Shown: positions 1 to 45,600, numbered from the stretch's first letter. The stretch: 64,000 nucleotides of DNA from Caecitellus pseudoparvulus (GCA_965644315.1 CBFFRQ010000093.1:1-64000), one strand, 5' to 3'. A program made the numbers and translations. The notes: generated by a model from the letters alone, not told the origin.

Positions 1-386
1 TACCAGAGTGCACCCAGTCACACGCACACTCTGGAAAGCCCCGACCTCGCGTCATGCGGGCTGCACCAAGACTTCCTCCCGGCTCGCCAAGTCACTGGCG
101 TTGCTGCACGCGTCAAACTGCGCCAGCATGCAGTCTCGCAAAATGCCCAATTCCAACGTGACGCACACTTCGTACGTTGCAGCTTGACGTTGTGTAGGTG
201 TGCAGCAGGCGGTGTCCCAGCTGCAGGCCTGCCATGCTCTCCACAGCAGCCGGCACAAGCCGGCAGAAGGCAAGTTGCGCGCTTGCGGAATTAGCCAGCG
301 CCGTGTGCAGCCCGGTGCTGGAGTGGCTGCGGCAGCCTGAGAAACAGCAGTGGGCTGGTCGACCACGCACATCTGGGAAGGCTGTC

Positions 387-3089
387 ATGGCTGCGCAAGG
401 TGGCAGCACTGTCGGTGTGCCGGCGCCGCCCCCTGCGCCGAAGAAGGTTGCGGAGCTCGAGAGCTGCCGTTGGTGGCCAAGATTGACTCCTGACGAGCAG
501 GGGCAGCTGAAGCAGCTGCTGGCCAAGCCAAAGGCAGCAGATGTCGATGGCAGGCTGTATGATGTGGCCAGTGTGGCCGTGCGCAGCAACATGGTAGGTG
601 GCGCCGTGCTGGAGCGTTGTGCATGCGCAGCATTCGAGCACTTGCTAGGTGTGCAGGCTGGCCCGCACCTGGACACCATGGCCATCATGCTGAAGCCAGG
701 CATGTTGCGGGATGCGTATGCACTCTTGTGTAAGGCGACTGGTGGTTCTGATCCCCTCACGAGGCTGGGCACGTTCCTGGGAGTGTGCTTCCGGTTTCCT
801 GTGGAAGGCTTGATCCAGTGGTTGGAGAGTGATGCAGCGCTCAAGGTCATTGGGCTGACTGACTCGTCCGGGGACGCCTTCCCGGCCAACCTGTGCGCTG
901 TGTTGAAGGACAAGGTGAGGCGTCACGCCCTGCAAGCTCAGCTGGCGTCGTACAGAGAAATTGTCGAGGCGAAGTACGACGGATGCCTGGCAGCGATGGC
1001 GGCAGACACCAGGCAGCAGGTGACGGAGGCCATGGAGGCTGTGGCGGAGGCGGGGTACAGCGACGAGGCAGTGCTGGTGGCGAAGCGTGCAGTTGTGGGA
1101 GCCTCGGTAGGTGGCGGCTAGCGTGGTCGCGGGTGTCAGGCGCACGCACCTGTGAATGTGCTTCCTTCGCAGCCATACGTGAAAGGTGAGGGAATGGCGG
1201 TGTTGTTCAGTGCAAAGCTGCTGGTGAAGACGCGGGAGGTGCTGGGGGCGCCTGACCATGATGTGGCTGGCGTCAAGCGGTACTTTGGCTTCTGGCGCTC
1301 GTGCACATTAATGACCCTGCGCGATGTGGCTTGTGCATTGGATGGGCCCAGACCGCGCAGGCCAGTAGGGGTGGAGACTGAGATGTGGGTCAGCTTCGTG
1401 ACCGAGCACCTGCAGCCGACAGCACGAGATGTGGAGTTGGAGGCCATGCTGGGCAGCATGCGAGAGTTTGCTGAGAGGTTTGATGAAGTGGTGGCAAACA
1501 AGCGAGGGACAGCCAGGGCTGAGAGAGCTGTGCAGGAGTTCAAGGACGCAGGGGGGGATGATATGTACCTGTTCATCATCAAGTATGCATTCGTCGTCCA
1601 GTATGTAAGTGCTGTGCGAGCGTTCACGCCTGTACTGCGAGCCGCTAGGCAAGCACGTGAAGCCGCTCCAAGCACAGGCATGCGACCGTATAGACGCTCT
1701 GGAGGTGTGGCTGCGCCCGGATCTGGCAGGGCAGGTCTGCCAACTGCTGGGTGCGCCTGTTTGGGATGCTCCAGCAGTCGAGCGCGTCAGAGGCTTTTTG
1801 GCCATCTGCATCAGCTACAGCCCTGAACAGCTGCTCCCGGGGGTGAAGAGTGGCCAGTTTGGACGATCCTTTGGTGCTGACGAGGCGGCATGGGCCACGT
1901 TTCTCGCTGAGCACCTGGGACCAGTATTGCACGAAGCTGCGCTGAAAGCCAAGCTGGACACGATGCAGCCTTACATTGACAGGTTCGACGAACTGCTGGA
2001 GACGTTGGGAGCCTCCTCCAAGACTGCCAAGGCCTTGCAGAAGCTGAAGGATGCAGGTGGCCATGATGTCTATGTGTGCATCGCCAAGTACGCCTATATG
2101 CGTTCCATGGTGAGTGCTGCGCAAGCGCGTCGTCTGTGCAGTGCGGTGTGGAGACCCATCGCTTGTGCCCGCTCCGACCACAGTGCAGCAGGCTGGACGC
2201 GTTTGGGGTGTTGCTGCGTCCTGAGCTGGTGAAGCGGTCGTACGAGGTGTTTGGATGTCCTGAACATGACACATCAGTGATTGAGGACCACCGCATGCAC
2301 TTGCTGTGTTGCATGGACCAGCCTCCTCACACCATGAGGGAGACGGTGTACGGCGGATCTCTGCTGCACTTCACCAGTGTTGACAGGGACAAGTGGCGCC
2401 GGCTGCTTTTCCGGTGTCTGACAGCCATGTGCCAGGAGGTAGATGTGAGCTGCAAGGTGGCCAGCATGCAGCGCTCGGTGGAGCAGGACTTTGGTCCGGC
2501 CCTTGCCTGTGTCACGGCGGAGAATCGAGGGAGGATCGAAGACGCGCTGGAAGCTGCGTCCGAGCCAGGTGTCGACCAAGGTGCAGTGACCATGGTGCAG
2601 TTCGCGTTCATGACGATCGAGGTGCGTGCTTGTGCAGTGTCTGCTCGCTTGTCTGGTCGACTGTGTGTGTGCTGTGCAGCCGTCCACAGCCCCCACCCGC
2701 CACCTTCACAGGGCGACATGAAGAACACAGACATGCTTGTGGCGCTGCTGCATCCTGACATGCTGGAACGCACTCACAGCGTGCTGGCTGCAGGTGTGCA
2801 GAGCGAAGCCAGCGTGGAGCGCCACGTGGCCTTCCTGAGACAGTGCATGACAGGGCGGCAGCGCCCCATGATGGACGGGGAGCGCTGCCGCCGCTTCCCG
2901 CTGCCCGATGGTGTGTGTGCCGAGGAGCTCGATGCGCTGTTGGCGGATCTTGGCTTCGGGGAGCAGCGGTCGGAGGCTCCTGCCGAGCCTGCTGAGCTGT
3001 GTGACGTGCAGTGGGGGCAGGCAGAGTGTGGCGCCTTGCCGCGGCCAGGCGAGCATGTGCCTGCCATGGTCAGTGTGCGTGCAGGGTAG
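387..3089 (+). CDS. Helical-repeat family protein A1, ~778 aa; predicted join(387..593,657..1106,1173..1604,1678..2109,2184..2621,2712..3089)
   Basis: Five GT-AG introns (63, 66, 73, 74, 90 nt), all phase 0, join several track ORFs into one frame. The internal exons are 150/144/144/146 codons and mutually similar (LDTMAIMLKPGML / EGMAVLFSAKLL / IDALEVWLRPDLA / LDAFGVLLRPELV / TDMLVALLHPDML). Splice sites are conserved in copy A2. Confidence 0.75.
841..1187 (+). repeat. Inverted repeat arm shared with 7139-7485 (~95% identity); also present at 17626-17972
   Basis: Manual alignment gives about 17 mismatches in ~345 nt. The arm covers the 3' half of exon 2, intron 2 and the start of exon 3. Confidence 0.9.
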
Positions 3090-4024
3090 GGCCGGTGTGT
3101 GGTGAGGTGCCACGCGCATCGCGGCCAGCCCTGGTGTCGAGTGTGGCGCAGGGCCGCTGCCGTTCCATGTGCCGTGTCCAGTGCCTGGTACGCTGCGATG
3201 CGCCATGAGTGACAGTGAGGCCAGGCGACTTGTGGAGACCGTGTGCTGCGGGGGCAGCCTTGGTTGTGCTGGCGTAGCTGTGTTGCGGGTCTGCGGCCGA
3301 GGGTGCGGTGTGTCAAAGCACGAGCACGTGCCGATGTGCAGGAGCGTATCGGCCGGTGGCCTGGCCATGTGGGCCGCGCATACCAAGCCACAAGCGGTGC
3401 GCGTGCAGTGCGGTGTTGACGCAAGGCGTGTGATGGTGGAGGGATCGCTGGATTCCTTTCGCCTGAAGTTGTGCTGCGTGTGTGTGGCGTGCAGATGAGG
3501 TAGAACCGTTGCTACTCTCTTCTGAGCCACCCAAGCGCCCGGCGGCACCAGTGCGAGTCTATGCGAGAGGATATGACGACAAGAGTTCAGAGCCGCCATT
3601 CGATGCTTGATGTAGCGAAGGCAGACTGAACCCCGTTGGCCGAGTGTGTGTCGACGCGCCCAGGCACGCATCACTTTCACACTTGGGGCACATCCACGCG
3701 GCTTGCGCTTGGGTCGCGACACACGAAGGCACACAACTTTGACAGATTTGGCTTGGTTCCTCAGAAAGTAGGGCAGCACACGAACCATGATTCCCGTTTG
3801 TGGCTGCACTGGAAAGCACCAGCCAACTCACGTGCCCGGCGCCTTGCGGCGGAGCTGCCACGCAGCTCGCCAACCCTGAACCATGCACACCGCGCCTGCA
3901 AGCTGAGCAGTGCGACTTGCTGGTGCACGACACGCAAGATGATAACTGTGTCGCTTGCCCCTTGGGCTGCCACATGCACTACTTCAGTACATTTCTGTGA
4001 CCGATCACACATGAGAGACTCAGG

Positions 4025-7000
4025 TCACTGAGCAGCCTCTCCTGCGTTGGACGCTGTAGCCTCAGATGGTGCTGCATGGCTGCGCCACCCATGATAGCAG
4101 CTCCTTCCTGAAGTCACCTCTACTCCTGGAATATCAACATGCACGTTGCTGTCAAGCTGCTGTGACGGACCTTCCTCCGTGAATGTCCTGTAGTTGAAAC
4201 GCAGGTGCACTTGTCCTGGCTCGAGCCTTGTTATGACGTTCTGTGGAACAGGATCTCCTTCTTCCCCCCGAGGATAGCATGCCAGTGCACGCTTCACCCG
4301 CTCGTCGATCAGCTTGAGCTGGCTTGGGCTCGCTGCAGCCTTGTGCAGTTTCAGCACTTGCTTCCGGGTCGAACCAGCTCCCTCCCAGCGCATTTCACCC
4401 TCTGCGAGGATGGGAATGCCGATACCTTGCAGGATGGCGCTCAGCAAGCCCATCACACTCGCATCTTGCACGATGTCTCTCTTTCTGACAATCTTCACTC
4501 GCGGTTGTTTGCCGTCTGCAACGTCGTGGACCATCCACCTTGGAACCGCGGTCAGCCATGTCAGCTCCCGCGCTACTCCACGGGGAACTTGGAATTCATT
4601 GCCATCAGCCCTCCACTTGCTCAAGATGGCTTGGATGGCTTTCTTCTTGGCGTGGACATGGAAGGGTGACATAGTTGACTCCTGGAAGGTCACAGTCACC
4701 ACGGTGGCTGTACCGAGCTCCTTCAGCCCAACCGTGACATGGTCGATGCCTGGGAAAACATGGGACGTGTGTATCGTGTGATGCTCGCCAATGCCAAGCT
4801 GATGAATCGCGGCAACATCAGCAAGGCTGATGCAGTTGCCCACTGCTGCGTTGCGGCAGATCGGAGGCAGTTGCCCCTCTTCAAATGCAGCCCTCCACGC
4901 GACCGATGGCCGACTGTCTGTGAGCAGCTTGGGCAGGTGCTGCTCCTGGTCGCTTGGGTGCATCGCAACACCTCCGCCCGCCAAGCCCATGTCCAGCAAC
5001 ACTGCTTCCGCCCGCTCAAACACTTTGCCATCAATCATTGCCTTGTGGCTTCCAAGCTTCCCAGAGAGCACCTTGTCGAAGCTGTCCACCCCCTCCTCAT
5101 TGACGGCTTCTACAGTCAGCACTTGAACCGCGTGTTGGACAACAAGCTGTGAGAAGGAAGACCTGATGAGGAAGCTCTTGGCCTTTCCTCCCATGTACTT
5201 GGCCGCCCCCTTGCCGGAAGCTGGCGCGGCGATGCAGCTGCCCAGCAGGCCCAAGCAATGGTGTGCGGGGGCCTCCTTGGTGTCACCCACCATCTGCCGC
5301 AGATGCTCTCGCAGCCAGCGACATTGCTCCTGCCCCACGCTGCCCAGTGCCGTCGTGAATGAGTCAACCAGGCCCTGGTGCGCATAATCCGGACTGCTGA
5401 GGGTCCGCGTCAGAGCAAAAATCACACCCAGATCACATCCAACATGACATACAAGGTTTGTCACCTCTCTGTGCGTTGGGTCGCTGTCACGCATCTGCAG
5501 GCGCAGTTCCTTCAGGGGCTGGGGAAAATCATGTAGTGACTCGTCCTCCTGCGCACCCGCACTGCCGCTCCCTGTCGCGCACCCACTGCCTGCATCATGT
5601 TGTTGAGTTAGGCTTCCACTCAGTACTTTCATGGCCAGGGCCGGTGTGGTGATGCCCAGCTCGTGCGCCGGACGAGCACCACCCACCACCGCGTCGCAGG
5701 CCGCCATGGTGCCACGGCACCCTTCAGCGGGCTCAAGCGCCCGCAGGTCATCTGAGAAGAACAGCACCGTGTGTGGCAGTCCCTCCAGGGTCAACAGTCG
5801 CCGCAGGTGTGCCCCCCATTCCTTATGGGGCGCTGTGCTGCACTTCAGCAGCTCCGCATGGACGAAATTCCCGTCCTCCACCAGCAGAATGCGTGGGGTC
5901 GCCGAAGCCCCCCCTCTGACTGACCCACATAACCCATTGACCAAGTCAGTGAGTTGCTGAAGGTGCTGAACCCCACTATCGTGCTCAGAAACCTTCGAGA
6001 GCAGGGCCCGGAGCCCTTCGTGGGTCAGAGCTCCTCCGCAACAAAGGCTCAAGAACCCGTGCAGCAGTTTGCCCAGCCACCCCCGCGCTCCAGACCTGAC
6101 CGCGCGCAAAATCTCGCTTGACAGGATAAACGCATCCCCCCCAGCTCCCACAGTCATCATCAAGGCCAAAGCTTGCACGCACCGCGCCTTGCCTGATCCG
6201 CGGGAACTAGCTGCCAGCACGCCGTCCTTGCCCTGGCCCGCGGCCGCAGCAAACGCCTCCACCATAAATGACGCTCGGCTGGGCGTCAGCAGGAAATCTG
6301 TGAACCACAGATCCTGGTTCCTTGGCTGCTCTACAGCTGCCGCCTGTCGATCGCTCCCAGCAAGGAGGCATGCTGGGATGGACCAATTACCGCCTGGTTG
6401 GCCAGCCGGAGCGTCGCCTCCTCGCGCCACAGCACCTGGCATGGTGCTCAGGACGGGAAGGCGCAGGACCACTGCTTCCAGGGCTGGGCCGTTCCATACT
6501 GGGCGGCAGCCGTTGCCCCAGAAGCGCTCCAAGTCGCCCCTTGCTGGGGTCCCTGCCGACCCGCAGGATCCAGTCTCAGCAAAACGTGCGTGTACCATGG
6601 AGAGGTGGTGGAAGACGGGCCAGATCGCCGCATCCTCCAGCCGCCTTGCACCGAACAAGTGCCGCATCCACCCGCAATTCCTGCGTATGCTTGCCAGCAT
6701 TACAGGACTCATGCCTCGCCAAAGCCCCTCCCAATGCTCCAGCGGCGTGCACTTGGGCCGGAAGCCAAGAAACACTTCGCGTGCATCCTCCAGGTGCTCG
6801 TGCTGACTGGCATGTACAACAGCATGCAACAAGACTCCTACACTCTGAACAGAGTGCTTGCGGAGTAGCTGCTGCCAGCTCGATACAGCCTCAGCGTCCT
6901 CCAGAGCGGGGATGATGAAATCCGACACATAATCTCCCCACGCCTCCTCACAGATGCCATCGGGTCGCCAAGCAGCGTCGCTCTGCAAGCGGTCTACCAA

Positions 7001-7958
7001 GTCGCCGGGCTGGTAGCCAATGTGCCACCACAAGTACTCCGTGTTTCGATGCAGAGAACCAACGTCACGCTCAGGCGCGCCCAGCACATTCAACATCTGC
7101 TCCAACAAACCAGGACTTAGCAACACAGCCACCGTTTTACCTTGCACATACGGCTGCGAAGGAAGCACAATCACAGGTGCGTGCGCCTGCCACCCGCGAC
7201 CACGCTAGCCGCCACCTACTGAGGCTCCCACAACTGCATGCTTCGCCACCAGCACTGCCTCGTCGCTGTACCCCGCCTCCGCCACAGCCTCCATGGCCTC
7301 CGTCACCTGCTGCCTGGTGTGTGCCGCCATCGCTGCCAGGCATCCGTCGTACTTCGCCTCGACAACTTCTCTGTACGACGCCAGCTCAGCTTGCAAGGCG
7401 TCACGCCTCACCTTGTCCTTCAACACAGCGCACAGGTTGGTCGGAAAGGCGTCCCCAGACGAGCTAGTCAGCCCAATGACCTTGAATGCTAGACCACTCT
7501 CCACAGCATTCACCAAGTCTGGTGCAGGGCATGCGAGACACCGTTTGAGGAAGTCAACCGTAGCTCCCCGTGCCTGGTGGTGGGAGGTCGCTTTCAGGAA
7601 GAAGTCACGCGCCTCGGCCAGCATTCCCGGCTCCATGAGCACTGCAGCGGAGTCAAGGAAGTACACCTGTACAAGGCAGAATGGCGTAGGGGGTGCGGCA
7701 AGGTCTTTCACTCTCTCAGCTCCAAGGAGCTCCGTAGCAAACATCGCCCCTCAAGCCCCGACAGGCCAAACTCACCGTAGACCCTTCGAAAGCGCTCCTT
7801 GCTACCTGCGCAAGGTCTTGGTCGATCCCCTCGGCTGCAAGGCTTGGAAACTCGACGTCAAAGCTGCTGGCTGGCTCTGCTGGCCTTCCGTGGGCAGTGA
7901 AACGCAAGCGCGTGACGGATGGTAGCATATCTCCACTGTCCTGGCTTGCAGCAGCCAT
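4025..7958 (-). CDS. Protein B, ~1252 aa: helical repeats + degenerate P-loop NTPase + PD-(D/E)xK-like nuclease region (Crinkler/RHS-type CR-like); predicted complement(join(4025..7153,7220..7666,7776..7958))
   Basis: A 1042-codon last exon and two phase-0 GT-AG introns at the same repeat positions as in A1. Motifs: SSRGSGKA (Walker A-like, ~6185-6210), RILLVEDG (Walker B-like, ~5870-5893), DGKVFE (~5015-5032), FPGIDHV (~4736-4757), VTFQESTMSPFHVH (~4650-4695). Confidence 0.7.
7139..7485 (-). repeat. Inverted repeat arm matching 841-1187
   Basis: The reverse complement encodes KVIGLTSSSGDAFPTNLCAVLKDKVRR...AVVGAS and the same intron as A1. Confidence 0.9.
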
Positions 7959-9500: not shown

Positions 9501-9830
9501 CCATTCCCCTCCCCGTCGTGCGCAGCCTCATGGGCCCGTACCTGGTCTTCCTCGCCTCCACCGTGAACGGGTACGAAGGCACTGGGCGCTCCCTCACCCT
9601 GAACTTCATCCAGCAGCTGCGCCAAGCAACGCTGCGTCCCACGAGCACAGGTGGCGGCGGCAGCAGGGGGCGCTGCGGCGGCTGGCACTGGTGCCAAGAT
9701 CCTCGCCGCGGCCCAGGCGGCGGAGGAGGGCGAGGCCATGGGGGGGCGCAAGCGGGCTCGGGAGGAGGCCCGCCCCAAGAAAGCCAAGAAGGACAAGAAG
9801 GCCTCCAAGAAGAAGGCCAAGAAGGCCTGA
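9497..9830 (+). pseudogene. NAT10: NAT10/Kre33 RNA cytidine acetyltransferase relic: helicase-domain fragment followed out of frame by a Lys-rich C-terminus
   Basis: AAIPLPVVRSLMGPYLVFLASTVNGYEGTGRSLTLNFIQQLRQ is the conserved NAT10/Kre33 motif. A different frame gives ...RKRAREEARPKKAKKDKKASKKKAKKA-stop (9828-9830). Confidence 0.8.
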
Positions 9831-9966
9831 GCTGCCTGGACCGCCAATGCAGCACGCCAACCTCACAGCACCCGGCGCAGCACGGCATCTGCTCTCACCA
9901 CGCCCTCTGCAGCCTGCACCAGGCACGCCCCCGCCTCGTCGAAGGCCTGCACCATGGCATGGTCGC

Positions 9967-11429
9967 TCAGGGCCACGGCATCACTGTCCTCCGCGGCCCA
10001 GTGTCGAAGGCGGCTCGCCGGCCCTGGCGCAGGCTGTCCCACACCTTGCCCCACGCCCAGGCCACCGCCGTCTCCAGGGCAGCAGCGGAGGCGGCGCTGT
10101 GCTTGGGAGACCACGGACAAGGCGTGCTGGCGAGTCCTCGCACGCTTTGCAGCATGATTGACACGGCACTACCCTCCCCACTACCCTCCCCCTCCCCGCC
10201 TGCTATCCCGGCCTGCCATCCACTCCTTGCGCTGGGATGGGTGCCCCCTCGCGCCGCCGCGATCGCCCACTGCCTCGACACCTCCAGCGCACCAGCCAGC
10301 AGCGCGTGGGCCACTTCCCTACTCGGCGTTGCGGGGCCTGTCTCAGCGCTGCCTGAGGTGACGTGGTTGTCGCAGCACAGTACAGTGGGCACACCTGCCC
10401 ACCACAGCAGGGGCAGTGGGTGCTCCCAGTACTGTACAGCCTCGCCACGACGGGCGCTGCCTGCGACATTGGAAGTCAGGCAGACTTCCACTGTGGCGCC
10501 ACTGTCCAGCAGGAGCTGCAGCGTGCTCTGCTGCTTGATGGGGGCTTGTGCCCAGCAACTGCGCGCCAAGGCAGCCGCTGCCGCCGCCTCGCCATTTCCA
10601 CCGAATGCGCACAGGTGCGGGGCCACCTGCAGCGCATGCCCCACACGCTGCGGCAGGCAATCCAGCGGTCCTCGTAGGGCCGCCTCCAGAGACCCTCTCG
10701 AGCCAGGCCACTCCCCTGCGTGCACAGTGGCGCTACCGCCGTCTGCCCGGAAAGCGGCCAGTATTGGAAGCAGCCACGCCCCGTCACCATCAAAGGCCGC
10801 AGAGCATTCCTCCCCGGCTACATCCAGGCCACAGCCATAGCGAGTGGCTAGGGACACCATGTCCTCTGCGTGCTCGCTCCCCAGCGTCCGGAGAATACAC
10901 AGCGTCACGCGCGCATTGCTGCTCCCAGCCGGCAGCCCGCTGAGCACGGCCTGCAGAGCCTCCTCAGCCGTCATGCCTTGCAGAGTGTGCAGCTGTGGGC
11001 AGAATCTCAGCTCAGTGTAGCCCTGCAATGCAATGGGTCGTAGTTGTGCAGGGGCAAGCTGCGCAGTTGCCGGGCAGCACGGCGCACACGCACACAGCCA
11101 TCCTCGGAATTTGATGCGGAAATCAATGCTGCAGCTTCGCGAAGGGCAGGCGGGCTCTGAAGGACGCTGTTCATGAAATCGAACACTCCCAGGGAAGTGT
11201 TTGCCTGTATGCCCTTTGCCCCTGTGTCATCCCAATACTGGCTGATGTTGCGGGTCCAAATGGCTTCCTGCAACTGGCGTGCTGCGGAACTTGTGCTCTC
11301 CATGCCAGCATGCTGCAACAAGAACTTCAGCGGCACAGATCCATCCAAGTGGGTGTGCAAGTCAACCTTCCTTAGTTTCTTCGTGTGGGGCAGCAGCGCC
11401 TTCACGGCTCGTTGCCACACCTGCTGCAT
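9967..11429 (-). CDS. Adenosine/adenine deaminase family protein (intron 11023-11093; 3' end uncertain)
   Basis: Motifs KVDLHTHLDGS, EDGC|GYTELRFCP, HAGE, RVGHA, EVCLTSN, HPL and CCDN match the ADA amidohydrolase family. Confidence 0.85.
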
Positions 11430-11781
11430 GCTGCCTTGGCAAAGGGGTGTGCGAGAGCTTTGGCTCCGGCTGGCTCAGGCTCCTGTTGCACTGGGCATGG
11501 CAGTCACCAAGTGTGCTGCTAGCAGCCCCAAAGTGAGTGCAGAATGAAGAGGTGTTGATATTTTTGCTCGTGGTCGTGTGTTTGCCCCAATTGCGTGGTG
11601 GCAATCAAATTATTCGTTGTGTTTCGCCTGTACTGTTCGAGTCAGTTTCTAAGATTCTGCTTTCTATTCTAACGGAAGACGAAGCTGGACTGTACTTGAC
11701 ATAAGAGAGTCTTCATCACTGCAGCTTACATGCTCAGGGCACACGCGAAAGTTCATTTTCAAACAGCAACCTTTGTCTATG

Positions 11782-12597
11782 TTAGTCTTCCCCATCTGAG
11801 CCTTCCAAGGCAGCGACCGTCTCGATTACTGCTCGTGCGACAGCTGAAGCCAGCTGCATGATGCACTCGTGAATGTTGAGTCGATACGTGGCTACATGCT
11901 TCCAGGCACGTTGAAATTCGAGGTGGCTGACGTACCCGTCGCCGTTCTCGTCCATTAGAGCAAAGACTTCTGCGGCCAGCGCACCAGCGCCACCAGTCAA
12001 ACGGTGCTCCAGGGACTTCCACTCGGCCTCCACAAAGTCCCACAGGGTGCCATGCTGTACCCACCGATTCATGGCCATGGTCAGCACAGTCGAAGCGACG
12101 GCGCACTCTTTGCGGTTAGCCTGACCAGAGAGGCCGAGTAACCTGAACCGCATAACGAGGATCTCTAGCACAGTCTCCAGGACAGCCTGCACCGAGCCTG
12201 GCTCAAATGTGCGTGCCAGAACTTGCTCTACAAACATCCCCACTTCAGTTTCGTCAATGTCACCGCTTCCGTCAGCGTCCAGCACTTCGAAGGAGCCCAG
12301 GCGGAGGAACTCACTGAGCAGCTCCGCGGATTCCAGGCGCTCCGCCTCCTCCAACCACGCATCTTCGGCCAAGTTGTGATTCAAATCTACAAGCAGTTGC
12401 ATGGCTCCCTCCACCTCTTTCCCACCGTGCTCAACGTTGTGCTCGGCGCTCACCATGGCCCACATGTTTGTGCCTTGCGAGAAGCATTGCCGTTGCATCG
12501 CATCCTTTAACAGCCGCCTTTGCAGCCGTTTGCGCAAACGATCCGGGTCCCATGCAATGCCACAAGTTTCACTGAGGACTGGTGAGGTCGCTGCCAT
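11782..12597 (-). CDS. EF-hand calcium-binding protein
   Basis: Two canonical EF loops: DADGSGDIDETE and DENGDGYVSHLE. Confidence 0.75.
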   Translation of the reverse strand: MAATSPVLSETCGIAWDPDRLRKRLQRRLLKDAMQRQCFSQGTNMWAMVSAEHNVEHGGKEVEGAMQLLVDLNHNLAEDAWLEEAERLESAELLSEFLRLGSFEVLDADGSGDIDETEVGMFVEQVLARTFEPGSVQAVLETVLEILVMRFRLLGLSGQANRKECAVASTVLTMAMNRWVQHGTLWDFVEAEWKSLEHRLTGGAGALAAEVFALMDENGDGYVSHLEFQRAWKHVATYRLNIHECIMQLASAVARAVIETVAALEGSDGED

Positions 12598-12723
12598 GGG
12601 GACGGCGTGTTGCGGAAATCGATTGCGTTGACTCCGGCGTGTAGGCAAGGGTCCTCGGCCGACTGCTGCCGTCTTCCTACCGACCTGGCACTGTGCTGAC
12701 AAAGAAGAAGTCGGGAAGTTAAT

Positions 12724-14412
12724 TTAGTCGCTGTCATCGCTGTCGTCTAGAATTGTACCCCCCCCGGCCACTGCCTGAGCAGGGAGTGTCGTTTGGTTGT
12801 GCTGCCCTGACACGTTGCCCCTCGCCTTGGAGCCAGCTCCGCGTGGCAGCGGGCTGCTTTCTGCGCTGCTGCTTGAGGACTCTTCTGCCAGGTCAAGGTC
12901 ACCCTGTAGCTTGCGTGCGATTGAAGACTGCCGCCGGTCCGCTGAAAAAGCCTGGTGTCGGCGACCTGCACTGGCCGTGCCATGCGCAGAATGCATATCT
13001 GTTGCGGACTGCGAACTGGAGCTGGAGTGCGAGCCAGAACTCGACCCAGAGCTGGACCCTGAGTCTGAGCTGGACCTCGAGTCCGAACTGGAGTGCGAGA
13101 GGGAATCCGACTGTCCGCCATGGGCTGTCTTCGGCGACAGAGGCCTGAACGCCGCTGCCTCTGGGAGATGCAAGGCACCACTGCCATCCACAGCGAGAGG
13201 GCGCCTTGGCAGCTTGGTGGCGGGGCTGGCGCTGGCATCCGAGGCCGTGTCTGGGTCTGAGGAGCCGAGCCCGGAGCTGCCCAGGCCGGCATCGGCCCGT
13301 GCCCTGTCGAGCAAGGTTGGGTCTTCAAACGTCTGCCGCAGGTATGCCTCCACCTTGTCAGCCAGGGCAGCGACGTCTCGTGAGACGAGCTTGGTGGCGC
13401 GCAGGCACAGCGCCCGGAAGCGACGCCTGCAGTCTGCGGCGGCGAGTCCAGTGCTGGAGAGGAGGTGCACCACGCCAGCCGCTACGCCGTGCCAGTCCAC
13501 GTGGTCCCACGACTCCTCGCCGTCGTCCACGACGTGCGCCAGGAGCACGGCGTCGGCGTACGGCGTCCACACGTGTTTGCGCTCCCGCAGGCCGAAGGAG
13601 CTGTACCACTTGGACATGCACTGCGCCTCGCAACGGGACTTCACAGCGCTGGCCACGGCTGGCCAGTGAATGCGCACCGCCCCCGGTTTTTCCACGTGGC
13701 CCTGCTCCTTCATGACACTCAACAGGCGCTCTTCCTCCGAGGTGCTCCACGGGCCATGCAAGATGCCTGGCGCATGTGCCTTGTACGTTTCGCGAACCAC
13801 GAGAGGGTGCCGCTGCATCATTTGAGCGATCTTCTTCCACTTGGGGCCATGAATGCCCACGAGGTGGCGCAGCTCCTTGATTTCTTCATCTGAAAATTTC
13901 CCCCTGTAGCTGTGTGGGTGCAGGAGGCGCTGAGCACGGGCCCGTAAACTCTGCGAAGCGGCGCTTGGCTTGGTGCGGTATTTGCTTGCGGAGACTGGTT
14001 CTGGCCACGCACCCTTATAGACCGTGACGTGAAGTGCTTGGAGATGTTCACCCAAAACCTGCCTTGGCCCTCAGCCTTGTGCTTGTTCACACTATCAAGG
14101 ATGACATCCTGACCGGACAAAGCGAGGCGCAGGTGCGGGAACAGCCGCCACCTTGGAAACAGCGGCATGGCTCACCTTTTTCGCCTCCTCATCCATGCCC
14201 CTCGCATCGCACTCGGCGTTGAACAGGTCCCGCAGCAGGTCATCCTCCGATTTAGACCACACGCCTCGTTTTAACTTGCTCTGGGCCGCCGGCAAGTCGG
14301 CGATCTGCCACGCCGACAACTCTTTGCCATCTTGGGCTGGCTCAGGTGCAGGTTGGCCAGCGTCCCCGCGCGGCCGCTTCCGCGCCCGGCGCCCAGAGCC
14401 CGCAGCAGCCAT
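12724..14412 (-). CDS. Myb/SANT-repeat DNA-binding protein, REB1/TTF1/DMTF1-like (two introns near the 5' end)
   Basis: Repeats RGVWSKSED, FWVNI, RGKFSDEE...HGPKWKKIA, GPWSTSEE...IHWPAVA...RCEAQCMSKW and WTPYAD...VDW, followed by a Ser-rich tail. Confidence 0.8.
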
Positions 14413-14499
14413 GGTACTGAAGCTCGCTGCTCTCACACTCTGCATGGAAGCATGGGCGTCGCACAGGAGCGTATGCATGGATTTTGCTGGCGCTCACGC

Positions 14500-16552
14500 C
14501 TACTGCTGCTGCGCGGCAGTCAGTGCCTCGTTTTCCTCACACGCAGCGGTGAAGTCCTTCACGGCCCGCACGTACGCACGCTGGGCAGCCTTGAGCTCAC
14601 CATGTGCTGATCGGGTCGTCTCCAGGGCCAGCCGCCGCTCTCGCAGAATGCCCTGCTGCTCGGCCAGGCTCGCTCGAAGGCCGTCCAACGCGCCGCCAAC
14701 AGAACTCATGAACTGCCCCGTTCCAGTCGTGGACTTCATCGCTGGCTCGAAGGTTTCGCCCATGGAGGACAGCAAGGAGTCCTCATGCTCCAGGTACTTG
14801 CGCCGAGCAGTGGTGGCGTTGAAAGTGGTGTAGTGCGCGCGCAACTCCTCCATCTGCCGCGCCATCGTGTCGTACAGCTCCATGAACCGCCGCTCGTACT
14901 GCAAAAGCTCCCCCCTGGACGGGACATCGTCAATCAACCGTTGCAGGCGGTCTACTTCCCGGCTGCGCCTTGCCAGCATGCCGCGCAGGCGTCTCTGCTT
15001 CGCCAGCGTTTCGCTGTAAGCCGCTTCGATTTCGGACAACCGCGCGCCATCCTTGGACTCGCTCTGTGATCCAGCTGCGCCATCAGCGGCCGCTGCAGCG
15101 GCGACTTTGAGGCCCGCCAGCTCTTGCTCGAGCTCCACAGCCTTGCGCCGGCAGTTGGCTTTGAACTCCTCCTCTTGCGTTGCAAGCGTGCCTTGCATGT
15201 GCTGCAACTTGCGAATCTTCGCAAACACTGCCCCTTGCCCCATCTCCTCCACCGAGTGGGCGATGGCATCCAGCGCCGCCTGCAACTTGGGGCCATACTC
15301 TCTGCGTTTTGACAGCTCCTGGCGCAGTGCTGCGCTTGACTCCTCCGCTGCGCTGGCTTCCTCCGCTGCAATGTCTCGCTTAGCCTCCGCCACCGCCAGG
15401 CGCCGGCGCAGGGACGCCACCTTCCGCGTATGAGCCTGAGCACGGCCCATGGCAGTGTTGGCCAGCAGTTCTCCCGATTCTGAGGCACGCTGCAGCTCCT
15501 CAGCCCGCGCGCTGTACTGTGCTGTCTGCGCACGCAGCGCGTCAGCCTGCAACGACAACACGCCACCCACAGCGTCTCCGCTCAGCCGGCTGCCACCGCC
15601 GCCGCCTGAGCTGGACATGCCAGACAAGATCTCCTCCTGCATGGCTTTGTCCTTCTCGGCTTGCGCCTTGGCGCGTGCCTCCGCCGCTTTCTGCGCCTTG
15701 GCCAGCTTGCGGTCGCTGGCGTGCTCCGCTGTGGCGCCCCCGCCCTGCCCCCCCTCGCCTGCACCGCCCATGATGCTGCCACGCTGTGTGCCAGACATGC
15801 GCCCCGTGTCAATGCGCTCGCCGTACTCCAGCAGTGCGCAGGCAATGCGGGCACCAGCGTCCAGGTTGCTGCGCCACATCCCGGCGTTTCTCCGGTACTG
15901 CCGCTTGGCAGCGTACCTGTCCTGCACTAACCCAAGGAAGTCCGTGCTATGAGGCACTACTGTTCGCGGGACAAAGTAGTTGGCTTCAAAGTGCGTCTCT
16001 GACCCAGCGCGGGCGGAAGCGCTGTGGGCAGCGCGGTACTCCAGCACCCTCGTGACGAGCCAGCGCACGACCGGCAGCATTGCGTCGAAGTGCTTGCCTG
16101 AAATCTGACTGGACTGCAAAGATGCAGGGCACCCCATGTCACGCAGCACGTCAATGACCTTTTCTCCAATGCGGCTGTGACAGAGCGCGGCAGAGCGGCG
16201 TGTGGGTGCTTGCCAGAGCTAAATGAAGCGCGGCACCAACATCTTCTTGCCCAAGGACAAGCTCTCGTCAAACTTCAGAGACACCGATGCAACGCTGCCA
16301 CTATTTGCAATTGCCCAGCACATGCCGCCGATCACCTATGGAGGGTGGGAGGCGCTTTGGATACGGCCAGCGCAAAGTGCACTGCACTTTGCGGCTTACC
16401 TTGTCGAAAGGCGTCAGCCCAGGCGCACGAGCCCGGAAGTAACCAGCTGACAGAAGAAGCCCCAGAACTTCAGCTAGTTTCGTCGCCTGCAACTGCGACT
16501 CCTCTGTGGACGTCTGGTCCTCCCCGCTGGCTGTGGCTGCGCTGCTAAACAT
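14500..16552 (-). CDS. CCDC93: Coiled-coil domain-containing protein 93 (CCC/Commander complex), intron-containing
   Basis: [34 protein letters not shown]...PVVRWLV and [23 protein letters not shown] are CCDC93 signatures. Confidence 0.9.
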
Positions 16553-16785
16553 GGTGTGTGGCCTTGCTCTCTGGCACGCGTCAGGCTCATGCACGGCCCA
16601 GAACGTGACAGTGACCGGTGATCCACCTTCACTGATAAGCTGAAGAGACCAGGTGGATCTGGAAGGTGAGCCAGGGCGCGGGTTGTGCCTCGCTCCTCGG
16701 AATGTGCGTGGCGCAGACTCTCAAGCCCTCTGCACATCATCGCACACGCAGCGTGCAGGGAGCGACCTCAGCGCCCCCCCCGACC

Positions 16786-19700
16786 TACCAGAGTGCACCC
16801 AGTCACACGCACACTCTGGAAAGCCCCGACCTCGCGTCATGCGGGTTGCACCAAGACATCCTCTCGGCTCGCCAAGTCACTGGCGTTGCTGCACGCGTCA
16901 AACTGCGCCAGCATGCAGACTCGCAAACTGGCCAATCCCAACATGACGCACACTTCGTACGTTGCAGCTTGACGTCGTGTAGGTGTGTAGCACGTTGCAT
17001 CCCAGCTGCAGGCCTGCCATGCTCTCCACAGCAGCCGGCGCAAGCCGGCAGAAGGCAAGTTGCGCGCTTGCGGAGTTAGCCAGCGCCGTGTGCAGCCCGG
17101 TGCTGGAGTGGCTGCGGCAGCCTGGGGAGCAGCAGTGGGCTGGTCGACCACGCACATCTGGGAAGGCTGTCATGGCTGCGCAAGGTGGCAGCACTGTCGC
17201 TGTGCCGGCGCCAACTCCTGCGCCGAAGAAGGTTGCGGAGCTCGAGAGCTGCCGTTGGTGGCCAAGGTTGACTCCTGACGAGCAGGGGCAGCTGAAGCAG
17301 CTGCTGACCAAGCCAGAGGCAGCAGATGTCGATGGCAGGCTGTATGATGTGGCCAGTGTGGCCGTGCGCAGCAACATTGTAGGTGGGGCCGTGCTGGAGC
17401 GCTGTGCATGCGCAGCATCTGAGCACTTGCTTGGTGTGCAGGCTGGCCCGCACCTGGACACCATGGCCATCATGCTAGAGCCAGGCGTGTTGCGGGATGC
17501 GTACGCACTCTTGGGTAAGGCGACTGGTGGTCCTGATCCCCTCACGAGGCTGGGCACGTTTCTGGGAGTGTGCTTCCGGTTTCCTGTCGAAGGCTTGATC
17601 CAGTGGTTGGAGAGTGATGCAGCGCTCAAGGTCATTGGGCTGACTGACTCGTCTGGGGACGCCTTGCCAAGCAACCTGTGCGCTGTGTTGAAGGACAAGG
17701 TGAAGCGCCATGCCCTACAAGCTCAGCTGGCGTCGTACAGAGAAGTTGTCGAGGCGAAGTACGACGGATGCCTGGCAGCGATGGCGGCAGACACCAGGCA
17801 GCAGGTGACGGAGGCCATGGAGGCTATGGCGGAGGCGGGGTACAGCGACGAGGCAGTGCTGGTGGCGAAGCGTGCAGTTGTGGGAGCCTCGGTAGGTGAC
17901 GGCAAGCGTGGTCGCGGGTGTCAGGCGCACGCACCTGTGAATGTGCTTCCTTCGCAGCCATACGTGAAAGGTGAGGGAATGGCGGTGTTGTTCAGTGCAA
18001 AGCTGCTGGTGAAGACGCGGGAGGTGCTGGGGGCGCCTGACCATGATGTGGCTGGCGTCAAGCGGTACTTTTACTTCTGGCGCTATTGTATGACAATGTC
18101 CCTGCACGATGTAGCGTGTGCATTGCATGGACTTAGGTCGCTAGGGCCAGAGGGGATGGAGACTGAGACGTGGGTCAGCTTCGTGACCGAGCACCTGCAG
18201 CTGACAGCCCGAGAAGTGGAGTTGGAGGCCAAGCTGGGCAGCATGCGAGAGTTTGCTGAGAAGTTCGATGAAGTGGTGGCAAACAAGCGAGGGACAGCCA
18301 GGGCTGAGAGAGCTGTGCAGGAGTTCAAGGACGCAGGGGGGGATGATATGTACCTGTTCATCATCAAGTATGCATTTGCTTGGCGTGATGTGAGTGCTGT
18401 GCGGGCGTTCACGCCTGTGCTGCGAGCCGCTAGGCAAGCACGTGAAGCCGCTCCAAGCACAGGTAAGCAGTCGGGTAGATGCTCTGGAGGTGTGGCTGCG
18501 TCCTGATCTGGCAGGGCAGGTCTGTCGACTGCTGGGTGCGCCTGTTTGGGATGCTCCAGCAGTCGAGCGCGTCAGAGGCTTTTTGGTCATCTGCATCAGC
18601 GCAACCGCTGAGTGGCTGCTTCCGGGGGTGAAGAGTGGCCAGTTTGGACGATCCTTTGGTGCTGACGAGGCGGCATGGGCCACGTTTCTCGCTGAGCACC
18701 TGAGACCAGTATTGCACGAAGCGGCGCTGAAAGCCAAGCTGGACACGATGCAGCCATACATTGACAGGTTCGACGAACTGCTGGAGACGTCGGGAGCCTC
18801 CTCCAAGACTGCCAAGGCCTTGCAGAAGCTGAAGGATGCAGGGGGCCATGATGTCTATGTGTGCATCGCCAAGTACGCCTATATGCGTTCCATGGTGAGT
18901 GCAGCGCAAGCGCGTCGTCTGTGCTGTGCGGTGTGGAGACCCATCGCTTGTGCCCGCTCCGACCACAGTGCAGCAGGCTGGACGCGTTTGGGGTGTTGCT
19001 GCGTCCTGAGCTGGTGAAGCGGTCGTACGAGGTGTTTGGATGTCCTGAGCATGACACATCGGTGATCGAGGACCACCGCATGCACTTGCTGTGTTGCATG
19101 GACCAGCCTCCTCACACCATGAGGGAGACGGTGTACGGCGGGACTCTGCTGCACTTCACCAGTGTTGACAGGGACAAGTGGCGCCGGCTGCTTTTCCGGT
19201 GTCTGACAGTCATGTGCCAGGAGGTAGATGTGAGCTGCAAGGTGGCCAGCATGCAGCGCTCGGTGGAGCAGGACTTTGGTCCGGCCCTTGCCTCTGTCTC
19301 GGCGGAGGACCAAGGGAGGGTCGAAGACGCGCTGGCAGCTGCCTCCGAGCCAGGTGTCGACCAAGGTGCAGTGGCCATGGTGCAGTTCGCGTTCATGACG
19401 ATCGAGGTGCGTGCTTGTGCCGTGTCTGCTCGCTTGCTTGGTCGACAGTGTGTGTGCTGTGCAGCCGTCCACAGCCCCCACCCGCCACCTTCACAGGGCG
19501 ACATGAAGAACACAGACATGCTCGTGGCGCTGCTGCATCCTGACATGCTGGAGCGCACTCACAGCGTGCTGGCTGCAGGTGTGCAGAGCGAAGCCAGCGT
19601 GGAGCGCCACGTGGCCTTCCTGAGACAGTGCATGACAGAGCCACAGCGCCCCATGACGGACGGGGAGCGCTGCCGCCGCTTCCCGTTGCCTGACGGCGTG

Positions 19701-20158
19701 TGTGCCGAGGAGCTCGATGCGCTGTTGGCGGACCTTGGCTTCGGGGACCCGCGGTCGGAGGCTCCTGCTGAGCCTGCTGGGCTGGGTGACGTGCAGTGGG
19801 GGCAGGCAGAGTGTGGCGCCTTGCCGCGGCCAGGCGAGCATGTGCCTGCCATGGTCAGTGTGCGTGCAGGGTAGGGCCAGTGTGTGGTGAGGTGCCACGC
19901 GCGTCGTGGCCAGCCCTGGTGCCGAGTGTGGCGCAGGGTCGCTGCCGTTCCATGTGCCGTGTCCGGTGCCTGGTACGCTGCGATGCGCCATGAGTGACAG
20001 TGAGACCAGGCGCCTTGTGGAGACCGTGTGCTGCAGGGGCAGCCTTGGTTGTGCTGGCGTAGCTGTGTTGCGAGTCTGCGGCCGAGTGTGCGGTGTGTCA
20101 AGTCACGGGCACGTGCCGATGTGCAGGAGCGCATCGGCCGGTGGCCTGGCCATGTGGG
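16786..20158 (+). repeat. Segmental duplication copy 2 (of 1-3373)
   Basis: Same colinear alignment as copy 1. It sits between the CCDC93 5' end and ZNHIT3. Confidence 0.95.
17172..19874 (+). CDS. Helical-repeat family protein A2; predicted join(17172..17378,17442..17891,17958..18389,18463..18894,18969..19406,19497..19874)
   Basis: Paralogue of A1 with the same exon lengths, intact frames and conserved GT/AG sites. Confidence 0.75.
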
Positions 20159-42665: not shown

Positions 42666-45600
42666 CTATGCATCCTCATCATCACTTGCTTCGCTGCCTC
42701 CGTCTATGGCATACACAGCCACGTTTGTGCCACAGCCCTCGCCCTCGCCATCTGCGGCGGCATCCGCTGCAGGCTTGGCGTCCTCGCTCTCGCTGGCCTC
42801 GCCCTCGCCATCTGCGGCGGCATCCGCTGCAGGCTTGGCGTCCTCGCTCTCGCTGGCCTCGCCCTCGCCATCTGCTGAGGCATCCACAGCAGGCTTGGCG
42901 TCCTCGCTCTCGCTGGCCTCGCCCTCGCCCTCGCCATCTGCTGAGGCATCCGCTGCAGGCTTGGCGTCCTCGCTCTCGCTGGCCTCGCCCTCGCCCTCGC
43001 CATCTGTGGTGGCATCCACAGCAGGCTTGGCATCCTCGCTCTCGCTGGCCTCGCCCTCGCCATCTGCGGCGGCATCCGCTGCAGGCTTGGCGTCCTCGCT
43101 CTCGCTGGCCTCGCCCTCACCATCTGCGGCGGCATCCGCTGCAGGCTTGGCGTCCTCACTCTCGCTGGCCTCGCCCTCACCATCTGCGGCGGCATCCGCT
43201 GCAGGCTTGGCGTCCTCGCTCTCGCTGGCCTCGCCCTCGCCCTCGCCATCTGCTGAGGCATCCGCTGCAGGCTTGGCGTCCTCACTCTCGCTGGCCTCGC
43301 CCTCACCATCTGCGGCGGCATCCGCTGCAGGCTTGGCGTCCTCGCTCTCGCTGGCCTCGCCCTCGCCATCTGCGGCGGCATCCACAGCAGGCTTGGCGTC
43401 CTCGCTCTCGCCGTGGCCTTCTGAACTACCGGCCAGGACAGCGCTCTTGATTTGTTCTTCCAACTGAGCTCGGGCAGACTCAGCAGCATCAGCTGCTTCG
43501 AAGTCTTCAGACTCCACCGCAGCCTCAACTTTACGCTGAAGCTGCGCAAGGCGTTGGCGCATGGAAGCGAGCTCCTGCTCAGAAACCACTTGACGCTCTT
43601 TTGTCTTTGCACCCTCACCCTCCGCAGCATCGGCAGCGTCTGCCTGGGAGGACACGCTAGCGGGCGAAAGCATGTCAGAGGGTGGATCGACAGAGGATTC
43701 TGCTTCTTCGCAGGGGACGTCAAGCTCCCACCCGTGCCTGTCGCACAGCACTGTCAACTCGGACAGCAGGACAGCCTCTTCCGCACTCAGCAGGTCGACA
43801 ACTGCCTGCAAGACGCCCTCGCCATGAAGGGCGCCGGGCAGCACTCCTTCAGGTTGCTCACCTGCCTCTGGTACTTCCTCCTCCTTGGTGCGCAGCGCAA
43901 CAGCTTTCGTCAGCAGTGCACGAAGGTGAGCGACCCCTTGCCTGAAGGCGTCCACCTTGGTGCTATCCACGTCTTGCTGAGCAGCGAGTGCTTCGTCCCT
44001 TGCAGATGCGAGAGTCTTGTTGGCTAGAGTCAACTTTGCATCCACCTTGTCAAGCTCTTGAGTGTATCCTGCCAGCTCCTGCTCTGCATCTGTGCGCTCA
44101 GACTGCAGGCGCTTGATCTCACTCGTAACACGGCCAGCTTCTTTGAACTGGCGTGCGGAGACCGCAGCCTTCTTGGCCTCCATGAGCCCTGGCAGGGCAG
44201 AGTCCACTCGCTCCAAGGTGGCCTTTACGTCTGAAGCGAACACTTCGATTTCGGAGCGCGAGCTCTCCAACGACTGGACTTCGGCAAGAGCATCAGCCAC
44301 CGCGCCGGTCGCATCACTCACACGCCCATCGAGCCCCGCAACCTTGCGTTGCAGCGCTGCCTCATGCTCAGAGGCCCACTGAAGCGCACTGACCAGCAAA
44401 GCCGCCCCTTCGCTTTGGTCATGCAGAAGTGCAGCCACTCGCTTGCCTGCCTCAAGCGAAGCAAGGTCACGGCTTCGCTTTGCAGCTGCCTCTGCCTCCT
44501 GCTCGTCCAAGGCAGACTGCTCTGCATCGCACTCGCTTTCTTCTGTGCTGATTGTCTCTAGCTTGCTGGAAATGCGCGCGAGTTGCTTCGTGTACCTTTC
44601 GCGTACTTTGTCCACCTGCCCTTCAAGCTCCAACAAAGCGCTAGCTGCCGTGGCGGCTTCCGCCCGCTTGGCTGCCAGAGCTTCCTCCAGAGCTTTCACT
44701 TCCGCATCTAGCTCTTCAGAACGAGACTTGGCAGCTTCCAGCTCGGGCTGCAGTTCTGCCGTTTGGTCTTTGATCGCACCCTCCACGCTTGCCCGCTCCT
44801 CCTCGGCGCGCTGGCGGTCAAGGGCCACGTGCTCTTCCTTCACTTTCAGCTGCTCTCGCTCTGAGGCCAGAGATGCCATCACAGCATCGTGGCTGCTCTG
44901 GGAGCTGGCCGAACTCTGCTCGTTGTGCGAGTTCTGTGCCTCTAAGGTTGCTTGCAGTGCTTGCTGTGCGCTAGCTGCCACGCCCGCTGCCGTTCGCAGC
45001 GCAGCACTCTTCGCAGCCTCGACCTCCTTCAAGGCGGCTCTGATGTCTGCTTGCTCTGCCTCAACTTCTGCGATCTGGGCTGCAAGGCCTTCCAGTGTCG
45101 CATTGAGCGCCTCTGCCTTCTCGAAGTCCTCAGCTTCTACCGCTGTCGCTTGAGCAGCACGCGTGTCAGACAAAGACCGCTGCAGGTCCTGGCACTTGGA
45201 AGCTAACCGGCCATCCTCCTCTACGAGTTCGGCACTCTCCTTTACGGCCTGGCGAAGGGCTTGAGCCACACTGCTCGTTGTGACTTGCAAAGCACTTGCA
45301 GCGGAGTGGAGCTCTGAGGCCGCCACATGCTCCTCCTGTGGCTCTTCGGGTCCATCATGGTGGGACGCCACAGGGCTATCCTCTGCTTGTTCTGGAGTGC
45401 TTGCTTTGTGAGCTGCGCTCATTCCAGGCAGAGGGGGCGGGACTGTGCCGTCCTCGTCTTCCGAAGGCGTGACAGTTGGCTGGCTCCGGATACTGAGTCC
45501 AGCCAACAGCCCTGTCCCCGTGCTGGGTAGCACCGCTGACTCAGATTGATCTCCATCTGTCGCCTGCGTGGCTGAGAATGTAAATCCTCCCGGGGATGCT

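Follow-up and report, generated by a model that had tools for sequence, protein, structure and literature searches.

Why the differences between two nearly identical genes should gather in a few short coding stretches, two of them abutting an almost unchanged intron, is the question raised by a 64,000-nucleotide stretch of DNA from the marine protist Caecitellus pseudoparvulus (GCA_965644315.1, CBFFRQ010000093.1:1-64000), which was analysed at its full length and is here called the window. The two genes, A1 and A2, are paralogues built of repeated helical modules, and the initial annotation of this DNA had read their divergent coding patches as a sign of diversifying selection on a binding surface. 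A different explanation is favoured here, with a probability of roughly 0.55: A1 and A2 would evolve in concert by gene conversion, and the patches would be peaks of divergence held by selection against homogenisation.

The paralogue pair and its divergent patches

The A1 segment (1-3373) and the A2 segment (16786-20158) are 94.8% identical over 3373 nt in an end-to-end alignment, with a constant offset (A2 equals the A1 coordinate plus 16785), and the window start falls within the duplicated segment. The gene model was derived from reading frames, splice motifs and the one-module-per-exon pattern of the family, with splicing predicted. The five introns (63, 66, 73, 74 and 90 nt) are all of phase 0 and run from GT to AG, and exons 2-6 each encode one all-helical module of about 140 amino acids, giving five modules per gene by the family module profile. 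The features concerned are:

Gene A1: 387 to 3089, plus strand; six exons, with intact frames and GT..AG introns in both copies
A1 exons: 387-593, 657-1106, 1173-1604, 1678-2109, 2184-2621 and 2712-3086 (3089 with the stop codon), plus strand
Gene A2: 17172 to 19874, plus strand; paralogue of A1, with intact frames and the same splice sites as A1
Patch P1: 1287-1385 (A2 18072-18170), plus strand; exon 3; 26 of 99 nt and 14 of 33 amino acids differ
Patch P2a: 1590-1604 (A2 18375-18389), plus strand; last codons of exon 3, at the C-terminal end of the module; 9 of 15 nt differ
Intron 3: 1605-1677 (A2 18390-18462), plus strand; 73 nt, separating P2a from P2b
Patch P2b: 1678-1695 (A2 18463-18480), plus strand; first six codons of exon 4; 8 of 18 nt differ
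Patch P3: 1798-1833 (A2 18583-18618), plus strand; exon 4, module columns 38-49; 9 of 36 nt differ

The counts on which the initial annotation rested were all reproduced, namely the 14 of 33 residues of P1, the exon 3/4 junction with VVQY|ACDRI in A1 and AWRD|VSSRV in A2 (8 of 9 residues), the exon 4 patch with AICISYSPEQ in A1 and VICISATAEW in A2, and the mere 3 of 73 sites that differ in intron 3 (1607, 1619 and 1634). Its observation that the exon 3 and exon 4 patches lie at the same repeat position likewise stands, P1 occupying columns 36-68 and P3 columns 38-49 of the 142-column module profile. One cancelling +1/-1 indel pair at 1593/1602 was found in the alignment of the two copies; read without gaps, it is a 12-nt block with 8 mismatches.

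The clustering of the differences is strong. By a scan statistic, the densest 100 nt hold 26 differences where the null maximum is 19, and windows of 15, 30, 50 and 100 nt all gave p<=0.0002. All of the clusters are exonic. Once the patches are removed, the 124 differences left (3.9% divergence) are spread in a near-Poisson manner (dispersion 1.23).

The differences within the patches also have a character of their own, with 23 adjacent-site pairs among 53 differences compared with 11 among 124 outside, and a transition to transversion ratio of 31:22 compared with 85:39. Such abundant adjacent changes and the lower share of transitions might be expected if the clusters had arisen by mutation acting locally (through template switching, error-prone repair or targeted mutagenesis, for example), with neither selection nor donor sequences. 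This was nevertheless judged very improbable. For no variant was a direct or inverted template of at least 10 nt found within 600 nt, the best local matches (7-9 nt) equalling those of controls, and all bases are involved, with no base-specific bias of the kind left by diversity-generating retroelements apparent by eye (uncounted). The clusters are, moreover, confined to exons, and independent environmental samples contain these forms again, hardly altered, which marks them as old and stable.

In the structural model of the exon 3 module, which is all-helical with eight helices (mean predicted local distance difference test score, pLDDT, 82.7), P1 would correspond to module residues 39-71, comprising the end of helix 3, the following loop, helix 4, a long loop and the start of helix 5. 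Each exon was treated singly; in the single-module model P2a is placed at the end of the last helix, and P2a and P2b together would form the junction between two modules. The changes in P1 avoid the scaffold residues conserved in the family (F40, C44, G58, P64, G66 and W72).

Some resemblances were also observed around the introns. Introns 3 and 4 (1605-1622 and 2110-2127) have 15 of their first 18 nt in common (GTRAGTGCTGYGCRAGCG), and GTAGGTGGCG is common to the 5' ends of introns 1 and 2 (594-603 and 1107-1116); the exons beside these alike 5' ends are only about 30% identical. Two sources of the likeness are conceivable, a donor consensus of extended length or the remains of a duplication that took in module and intron together. 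In A2 (18455-18470), exon 4 opens with GTAAGC directly after the acceptor CAG, a donor-like motif following an acceptor and lying within P2b, where A1 has GCATGC.

Silent and replacement divergence

Between A1 and A2, the four patches pooled differ at a proportion of 0.458 of silent sites (pS) and 0.267 of replacement sites (pN), which corresponds to a ratio of replacement to silent substitution rates (dN/dS) of about 0.47. The remaining coding sequence has a pS of 0.069 and a pN of 0.023, and introns and flanks show a plain divergence of 4.9%. Silent divergence in the patches is 6.6-fold above background. This excess is not an artefact of codons hit several times, because 5 of the 19 P1 codons with an unchanged amino acid carry a silent difference. 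P1 taken alone gave a pS of 0.41, a pN of 0.22 and a dN/dS of 0.43, and P3 a dN/dS of 1.2 that is not significant. Across eight sequences (A1, A2 and the six environmental contigs considered below), the ratio of replacement to silent nucleotide diversity (piN/piS) was 0.43-0.76 in the patches, with 1.2 in P3. The patches have a deeper and different history than the surrounding DNA. Outside them dN/dS is 0.32, which places the A1 gene under purifying selection.

The initial annotation had proposed dN/dS as the test of its reading, values at or below 1 in the patches counting against diversifying selection; the values found, below 1 when pooled and in P1 and a non-significant 1.2 in P3, do not bear that reading out.

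Environmental homologues and the two patch forms

Six marine metagenome contigs covering parts of the gene were found through protein searches, of which L079 runs into the flank downstream of A2 and L081 into the flank downstream of A1. The forms of the patches, with the two forms of P1, P2b and P3 called alpha and beta, are:

A1: P1 alpha; P2a VVQY; P2b alpha; P3 alpha
L081: P1 alpha; P2a VVQY; P2b alpha; P3 alpha
L080: P1 alpha; P2a ARRY; P2b alpha; P3 alpha
L079: P1 alpha; P2a ARRY; P2b alpha; P3 beta
L076: P1 beta; P2a ARRY; P2b beta; P3 outside coverage
A2: P1 beta; P2a AWRD; P2b beta; P3 beta
L077: P1 outside coverage; P2a AWGD; P2b beta; P3 beta
L078: P1 outside coverage; P2a ADEF; P2b near-beta; P3 beta

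P1, P2b and P3 thus each exist as two discrete forms that are internally conserved and track the A1-type and the A2-type gene. The alpha form of P2b is ACDRID (A1, L079, L080 and L081) and the beta form VSSRVD (A2, L076 and L077), with ASSRVD in L078; the beta form of P3 is identical in A2, L077, L078 and L079. Within a form of P1, pN is 0.03-0.04 and pS 0.14-0.16, and the beta P2b peptide VSSRVD is kept despite 3 silent changes, a pattern of purifying constraint within a form. P2a alone among the patches is truly multi-allelic and hypervariable, with five forms in eight sequences (VVQY, AWRD, ARRY, AWGD and ADEF), and its variable sites act as shared or multi-allelic polymorphisms.

Two further dense, strain-specific clusters were seen in single contigs. 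Just before P2a (A1 coordinates 1562-1589), L076 has a cluster that changes DDMY..KYA to DETY..KHV, and in exon 5 of L078 (A1 coordinates 2316-2319) DQ is replaced by SK at module columns 42-43, which are also columns of P1 and P3.

Fixed differences between the two gene types were counted over 1226-2745, with A1, L080 and L081 as the A1-type and A2, L077 and L078 as the A2-type. There were 35 in the 168 nt of the patches and 9 in the 1352 nt of background, while polymorphic sites numbered 23 and 64, respectively (Fisher p=8e-9 for fixed versus polymorphic). The background is a mosaic in which 23 polymorphisms are common to both types and the between-type distance outside the patches (2.2-3.8%) is barely above the within-type distance (1.0-2.8%). 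The minimum number of recombination events (Rm) was at least 6 and at least 8 in two sets of four sequences, and block switching was observed in L076 and L079 at scales down to 6-12 nt. Intron 3 had a pairwise diversity of 0.058 among the first six sequences; its last 26 nt are without variation in all eight, and its first 6 nt vary at position +3 only (GTAAGT/GTGAGT).

These sequences bear on the idea that recurrent positive diversifying selection, in the style of an arms race, fixed point substitutions on a ligand-binding surface after a recent duplication. P2a behaves in this manner, its five forms including the closely related AWRD, ARRY and AWGD, which differ by 3 replacement and 0 silent changes, and four different codons occur at 1347-1349. 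The P3 dN/dS of 1.2 (not significant), the 26 replacement to 9 silent changes among the fixed patch differences, and the recurrence of the same module columns in exons 3 and 4 and, in L078, exon 5 would also fit. As an account of the patches as a whole, however, it is quite improbable given that dN/dS in the patches is 0.43-0.47 with the 6.6-fold rise in pS, that purely synonymous changes occur at those 5 of 19 unchanged P1 codons, that P1, P2b and P3 are dimorphic and stable across strains with no series of new variants, and that module columns 36-68 are not enriched in changes among fourteen independent recent paralogue pairs of the family. The four P2a codons, and perhaps the codon at 1347-1349, are the only ones for which recurrent positive selection is plausible.

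An artefact, whether through misassembly, a pseudogenised copy or an incorrect gene model, might be suspected where the assembly is fragmented at the A gene and the gene model comes from the sequence only. It is barely credible here, as open frames and all splice sites are kept in both copies, background dN/dS is 0.3, and marine metagenomes independently yielded the two forms of every patch, either exactly or with few changes.

Donor search and exchange within the family

The main rival to the explanation favoured here is a neutral one, in which one copy, after a recent duplication (about 5% divergence), acquired short conversion tracts from at least one diverged paralogue, since lost or missing from the assembly, the tracts being neutral passengers later shuffled between the copies. 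The initial annotation had itself named conversion tracts from neutrally diverged paralogues as the alternative to its reading, and such import would leave silent and replacement sites equally raised and the adjacent-site pairs (23 among 53) as abundant as they are.

No donor was found. Searches of the 30.6-Mb assembly, which is incomplete at the A gene, with 22-mers from both variants of P2a, P2b and P3, allowing up to 3 mismatches, returned no match beyond the patches themselves, chance hits aside, and P1 had no match other than itself in a genome DNA search of low sensitivity. The k-mers shared with about 60 loci of the family and with the rest of the window were at the level of controls. 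Hits of the A2 form of P3 with 3 mismatches in a dispersed repeat were judged to be chance, the flanks having no similarity, and likewise one hit at an unrelated site. The dispersed repeat itself occurs at least 23 times with an unvaried 22-mer (C21:18479-18500 and at least 22 other places; core CAGCGCCACCGCTGCCTGGCTG), and in the three copies inspected the identity extends over some 100 nt around it.

Copies of the A gene may nonetheless be missing from the assembly. Three contigs break within about 10 nt of one point just upstream of an A-type gene (window position 1, which is the start of contig C93; C73 at 83374-84091; and C118), C118 (1-381 and 6839-7087) looks like a 92-95% duplicate of window 9680-16785, and the 718 nt upstream in L076 are 100% identical to the end of C73. 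Further A-type copies or haplotypes may therefore be unassembled.

Sequence exchange does take place within this family. Gene B (4025-7744, minus strand), which is convergent with A1 and has a 1049-amino-acid open frame with two family modules at its N-terminus, carries the following tract:

Gene B tract: 7062 to 7503, minus strand; homologous to A1 823-1264, covering the 3' half of exon 2, intron 2 and the start of exon 3

The tract is 89% identical to A1 overall, with a core at about 895-1172 that is roughly 95% identical by eye (not computed), and divergence resumes just past the acceptor of intron 2. Of the sites that distinguish A1 from A2, B has the A1 state at 9 and the A2 state at 3. 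The tract shows that members of the family exchange sequence. Elsewhere, a tandem array (C38:162954-176856 and C54:345915-349806) contains family units of 3.3-3.6 kb with 90-94% identity and strongly mosaic ancestry. It includes a dimorphic cassette of 24 nt, 15 of them different (EPVLASLP versus AAALRRLP), that is identical in non-sister units, and the 3.3-kb unit is divided into blocks, the shortest of 23 nt, that favour each of the three possible 2:2 groupings in alternation.

This short-tract cassette exchange, together with the contig breaks and the C118 duplicate, speaks for neutral import. It is still rated unlikely, as it lacks a donor for P2a, P2b and P3 in the assembly and any other match for P1 (by the low-sensitivity search), sharing of k-mers with the 60 family loci is at control level, and the other family members, at 22-31% protein identity, are too distant to yield the 26%-diverged P1 in one tract. 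It would further require four separate tracts, two of which abut one intron without entering it.

Hypervariability of the P1 and P3 columns in the family as a whole was also considered, and was ruled out by the fourteen recent paralogue pairs mentioned above. Other recent pairs have dense patches too, at other module columns.

Proposed concerted evolution with peaks of divergence

The favoured explanation joins the clustering of the differences, the raised silent divergence, the fixation by gene type, the mosaic background and the conversion found elsewhere in the family. Repeated gene conversion or recombination between A1 and A2, and among alleles in the population, would keep exons, introns and flanks about 3-5% apart. 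Four short exonic tracts would escape this homogenisation and retain older sequence, with about 26-60% nucleotide divergence at silent and replacement sites alike. The most likely reason for their escape is that converted alleles are selected against, the patch residues making the two proteins functionally different. By the structural model, the parts affected would be helix 3, the following loop, helix 4 and the long loop of the module, as well as the junction between modules. High silent divergence is expected in such peaks because silent sites interleaved with selected sites cannot convert separately.

That selection rather than chance preserves the patches is the most likely reading, and the patches may determine binding specificity. 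In this respect the suggestion of selection in the initial annotation probably survives in part, as the maintenance of paralogue-specific forms against gene conversion; its picture of fast-changing sequence does not, pooled dN/dS in the patches being below 1 and the forms of P1, P2b and P3 old and stable.

Several points weigh against this explanation. The edges of the peaks are very sharp, within a few nucleotides of the intron, which needs either very short conversion tracts or a splicing constraint; the sharpness at intron 3 is partly explained by splicing constraint, since the last 26 nt of this intron are invariant and its first 6 nt vary at +3 only. The tests made give no direct sign of selection: dN/dS in the pooled patches is below 1, and a contrast of the McDonald-Kreitman type within the patches is not significant (fixed replacement to silent 26:9 against polymorphic 13:10, p=0.25). 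The assignment of environmental sequences to loci is only partly established, and in the 'fixed' class of P1 the A2-type is A2 alone, supported by L076. Metagenome contigs are possibly chimeric between strains or paralogues, so that long-range linkage, such as alpha P1 with beta P3 in L079, and part of the mosaic signal are perhaps artefacts, although some switches lie 6-12 nt apart and are too close for assembly chimeras. Finally, expression of A1 and A2 is putative, and their splicing is predicted from the sequence.

If selection does hold the patches, they mark the residues that make the A1 and A2 proteins functionally distinct. In that case they would be the one functional lead so far on a family that lacks known relatives, domains and fold matches, and that comes from an abundant kind of marine protist. 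Exchange tracts as short as those of the family (about 23 nt) also bear on how multigene families evolve in such genomes. A wider and doubtful proposal is that these orphan helical modules constitute a recognition repertoire, in which specificity cassettes (helix 3, loop and helix 4, and the junctions) are kept as discrete forms and recombined between paralogues by very short conversion tracts. If true, cassette reshuffling would be a combinatorial way of both generating and preserving binding diversity without a dedicated mutator.

The gene family and other features of the window

Six-frame translation of the 30.6-Mb genome revealed more than 50 further modules, with 22-31% protein identity, on at least nine other contigs. 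No Pfam match was obtained for any of the six exons or gene B, and no PADLOC match for exons 3-4 or gene B (gene B at E<=0.1 in both cases). A fold search with the module model gave no credible match (best PDB E 3.4; ESM Atlas template modelling score, TM, <=0.41). A profile search with the module against 1.84 billion representative proteins returned 38 matches only, nearly all of them short fragments resembling open reading frames, and every match whose source was looked up came from a marine metagenome, including Tara Oceans. A word-based protein search with the 507-amino-acid open frame of A2 found no match, and a scan of metagenome contigs of the Joint Genome Institute (JGI) found no relative.

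Elsewhere in the window, self-comparison identified a tandem repeat array at 42735-43419 with a period of about 60 nt and copies that are 88-96% identical.

Comparison with known systems

Peaks of divergence between duplicates that undergo interlocus gene conversion are a known signature of selection, for example in exon 5 of the human red and green opsins and in RHCE/RHD (PMC3924837). The A1/A2 pair is like these in that conversion keeps the paralogues similar, introns and flanks included, and leaves narrow exonic peaks beside flanking introns of low divergence (PMC3924837). Islands of divergence that persist despite gene conversion have also been described for the GOT1 paralogues of the copepod Tigriopus californicus (PMC3728101). 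GOT1 shares with A1/A2 the lasting divergent islands left by conversion and the novel combinations of alleles, and differs in being a metabolic enzyme of known function (PMC3728101). Unlike the opsins and RHCE/RHD, the A1/A2 pair has much shorter peaks (12-99 nt), four of them and one multi-allelic, and it belongs to an orphan family in a marine protist.

A further comparison is offered by the peptide-binding exons of the major histocompatibility complex (MHC) and the hypervariable leucine-rich-repeat residues of plant nucleotide-binding leucine-rich-repeat receptors (NLR), where diversity is concentrated in short coding stretches with raised silent diversity beside the selected sites. In these systems introns are homogenised by recombination and alleles are mosaic, with many alleles and a dN/dS above 1 at contact residues. 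A1/A2 resemble them in their short diverse coding stretches, raised silent diversity, homogenised introns and mosaic alleles. They differ from them in the two-form state of P1, P2b and P3 and in a dN/dS below 1, P2a being the only patch that comes near the behaviour of MHC and NLR genes; Pfam, PADLOC and fold searches revealed no homology of the family to either.

The A1/A2 pair adds a case to an evolutionary pattern already described, and does so in a gene family without known relatives. Where near-identical paralogues differ by clusters of amino acids, rapid adaptive evolution need not be the cause; here the silent sites and the environmental sequences reveal old forms, specific to gene type, that persist in surroundings evened out by gene conversion.

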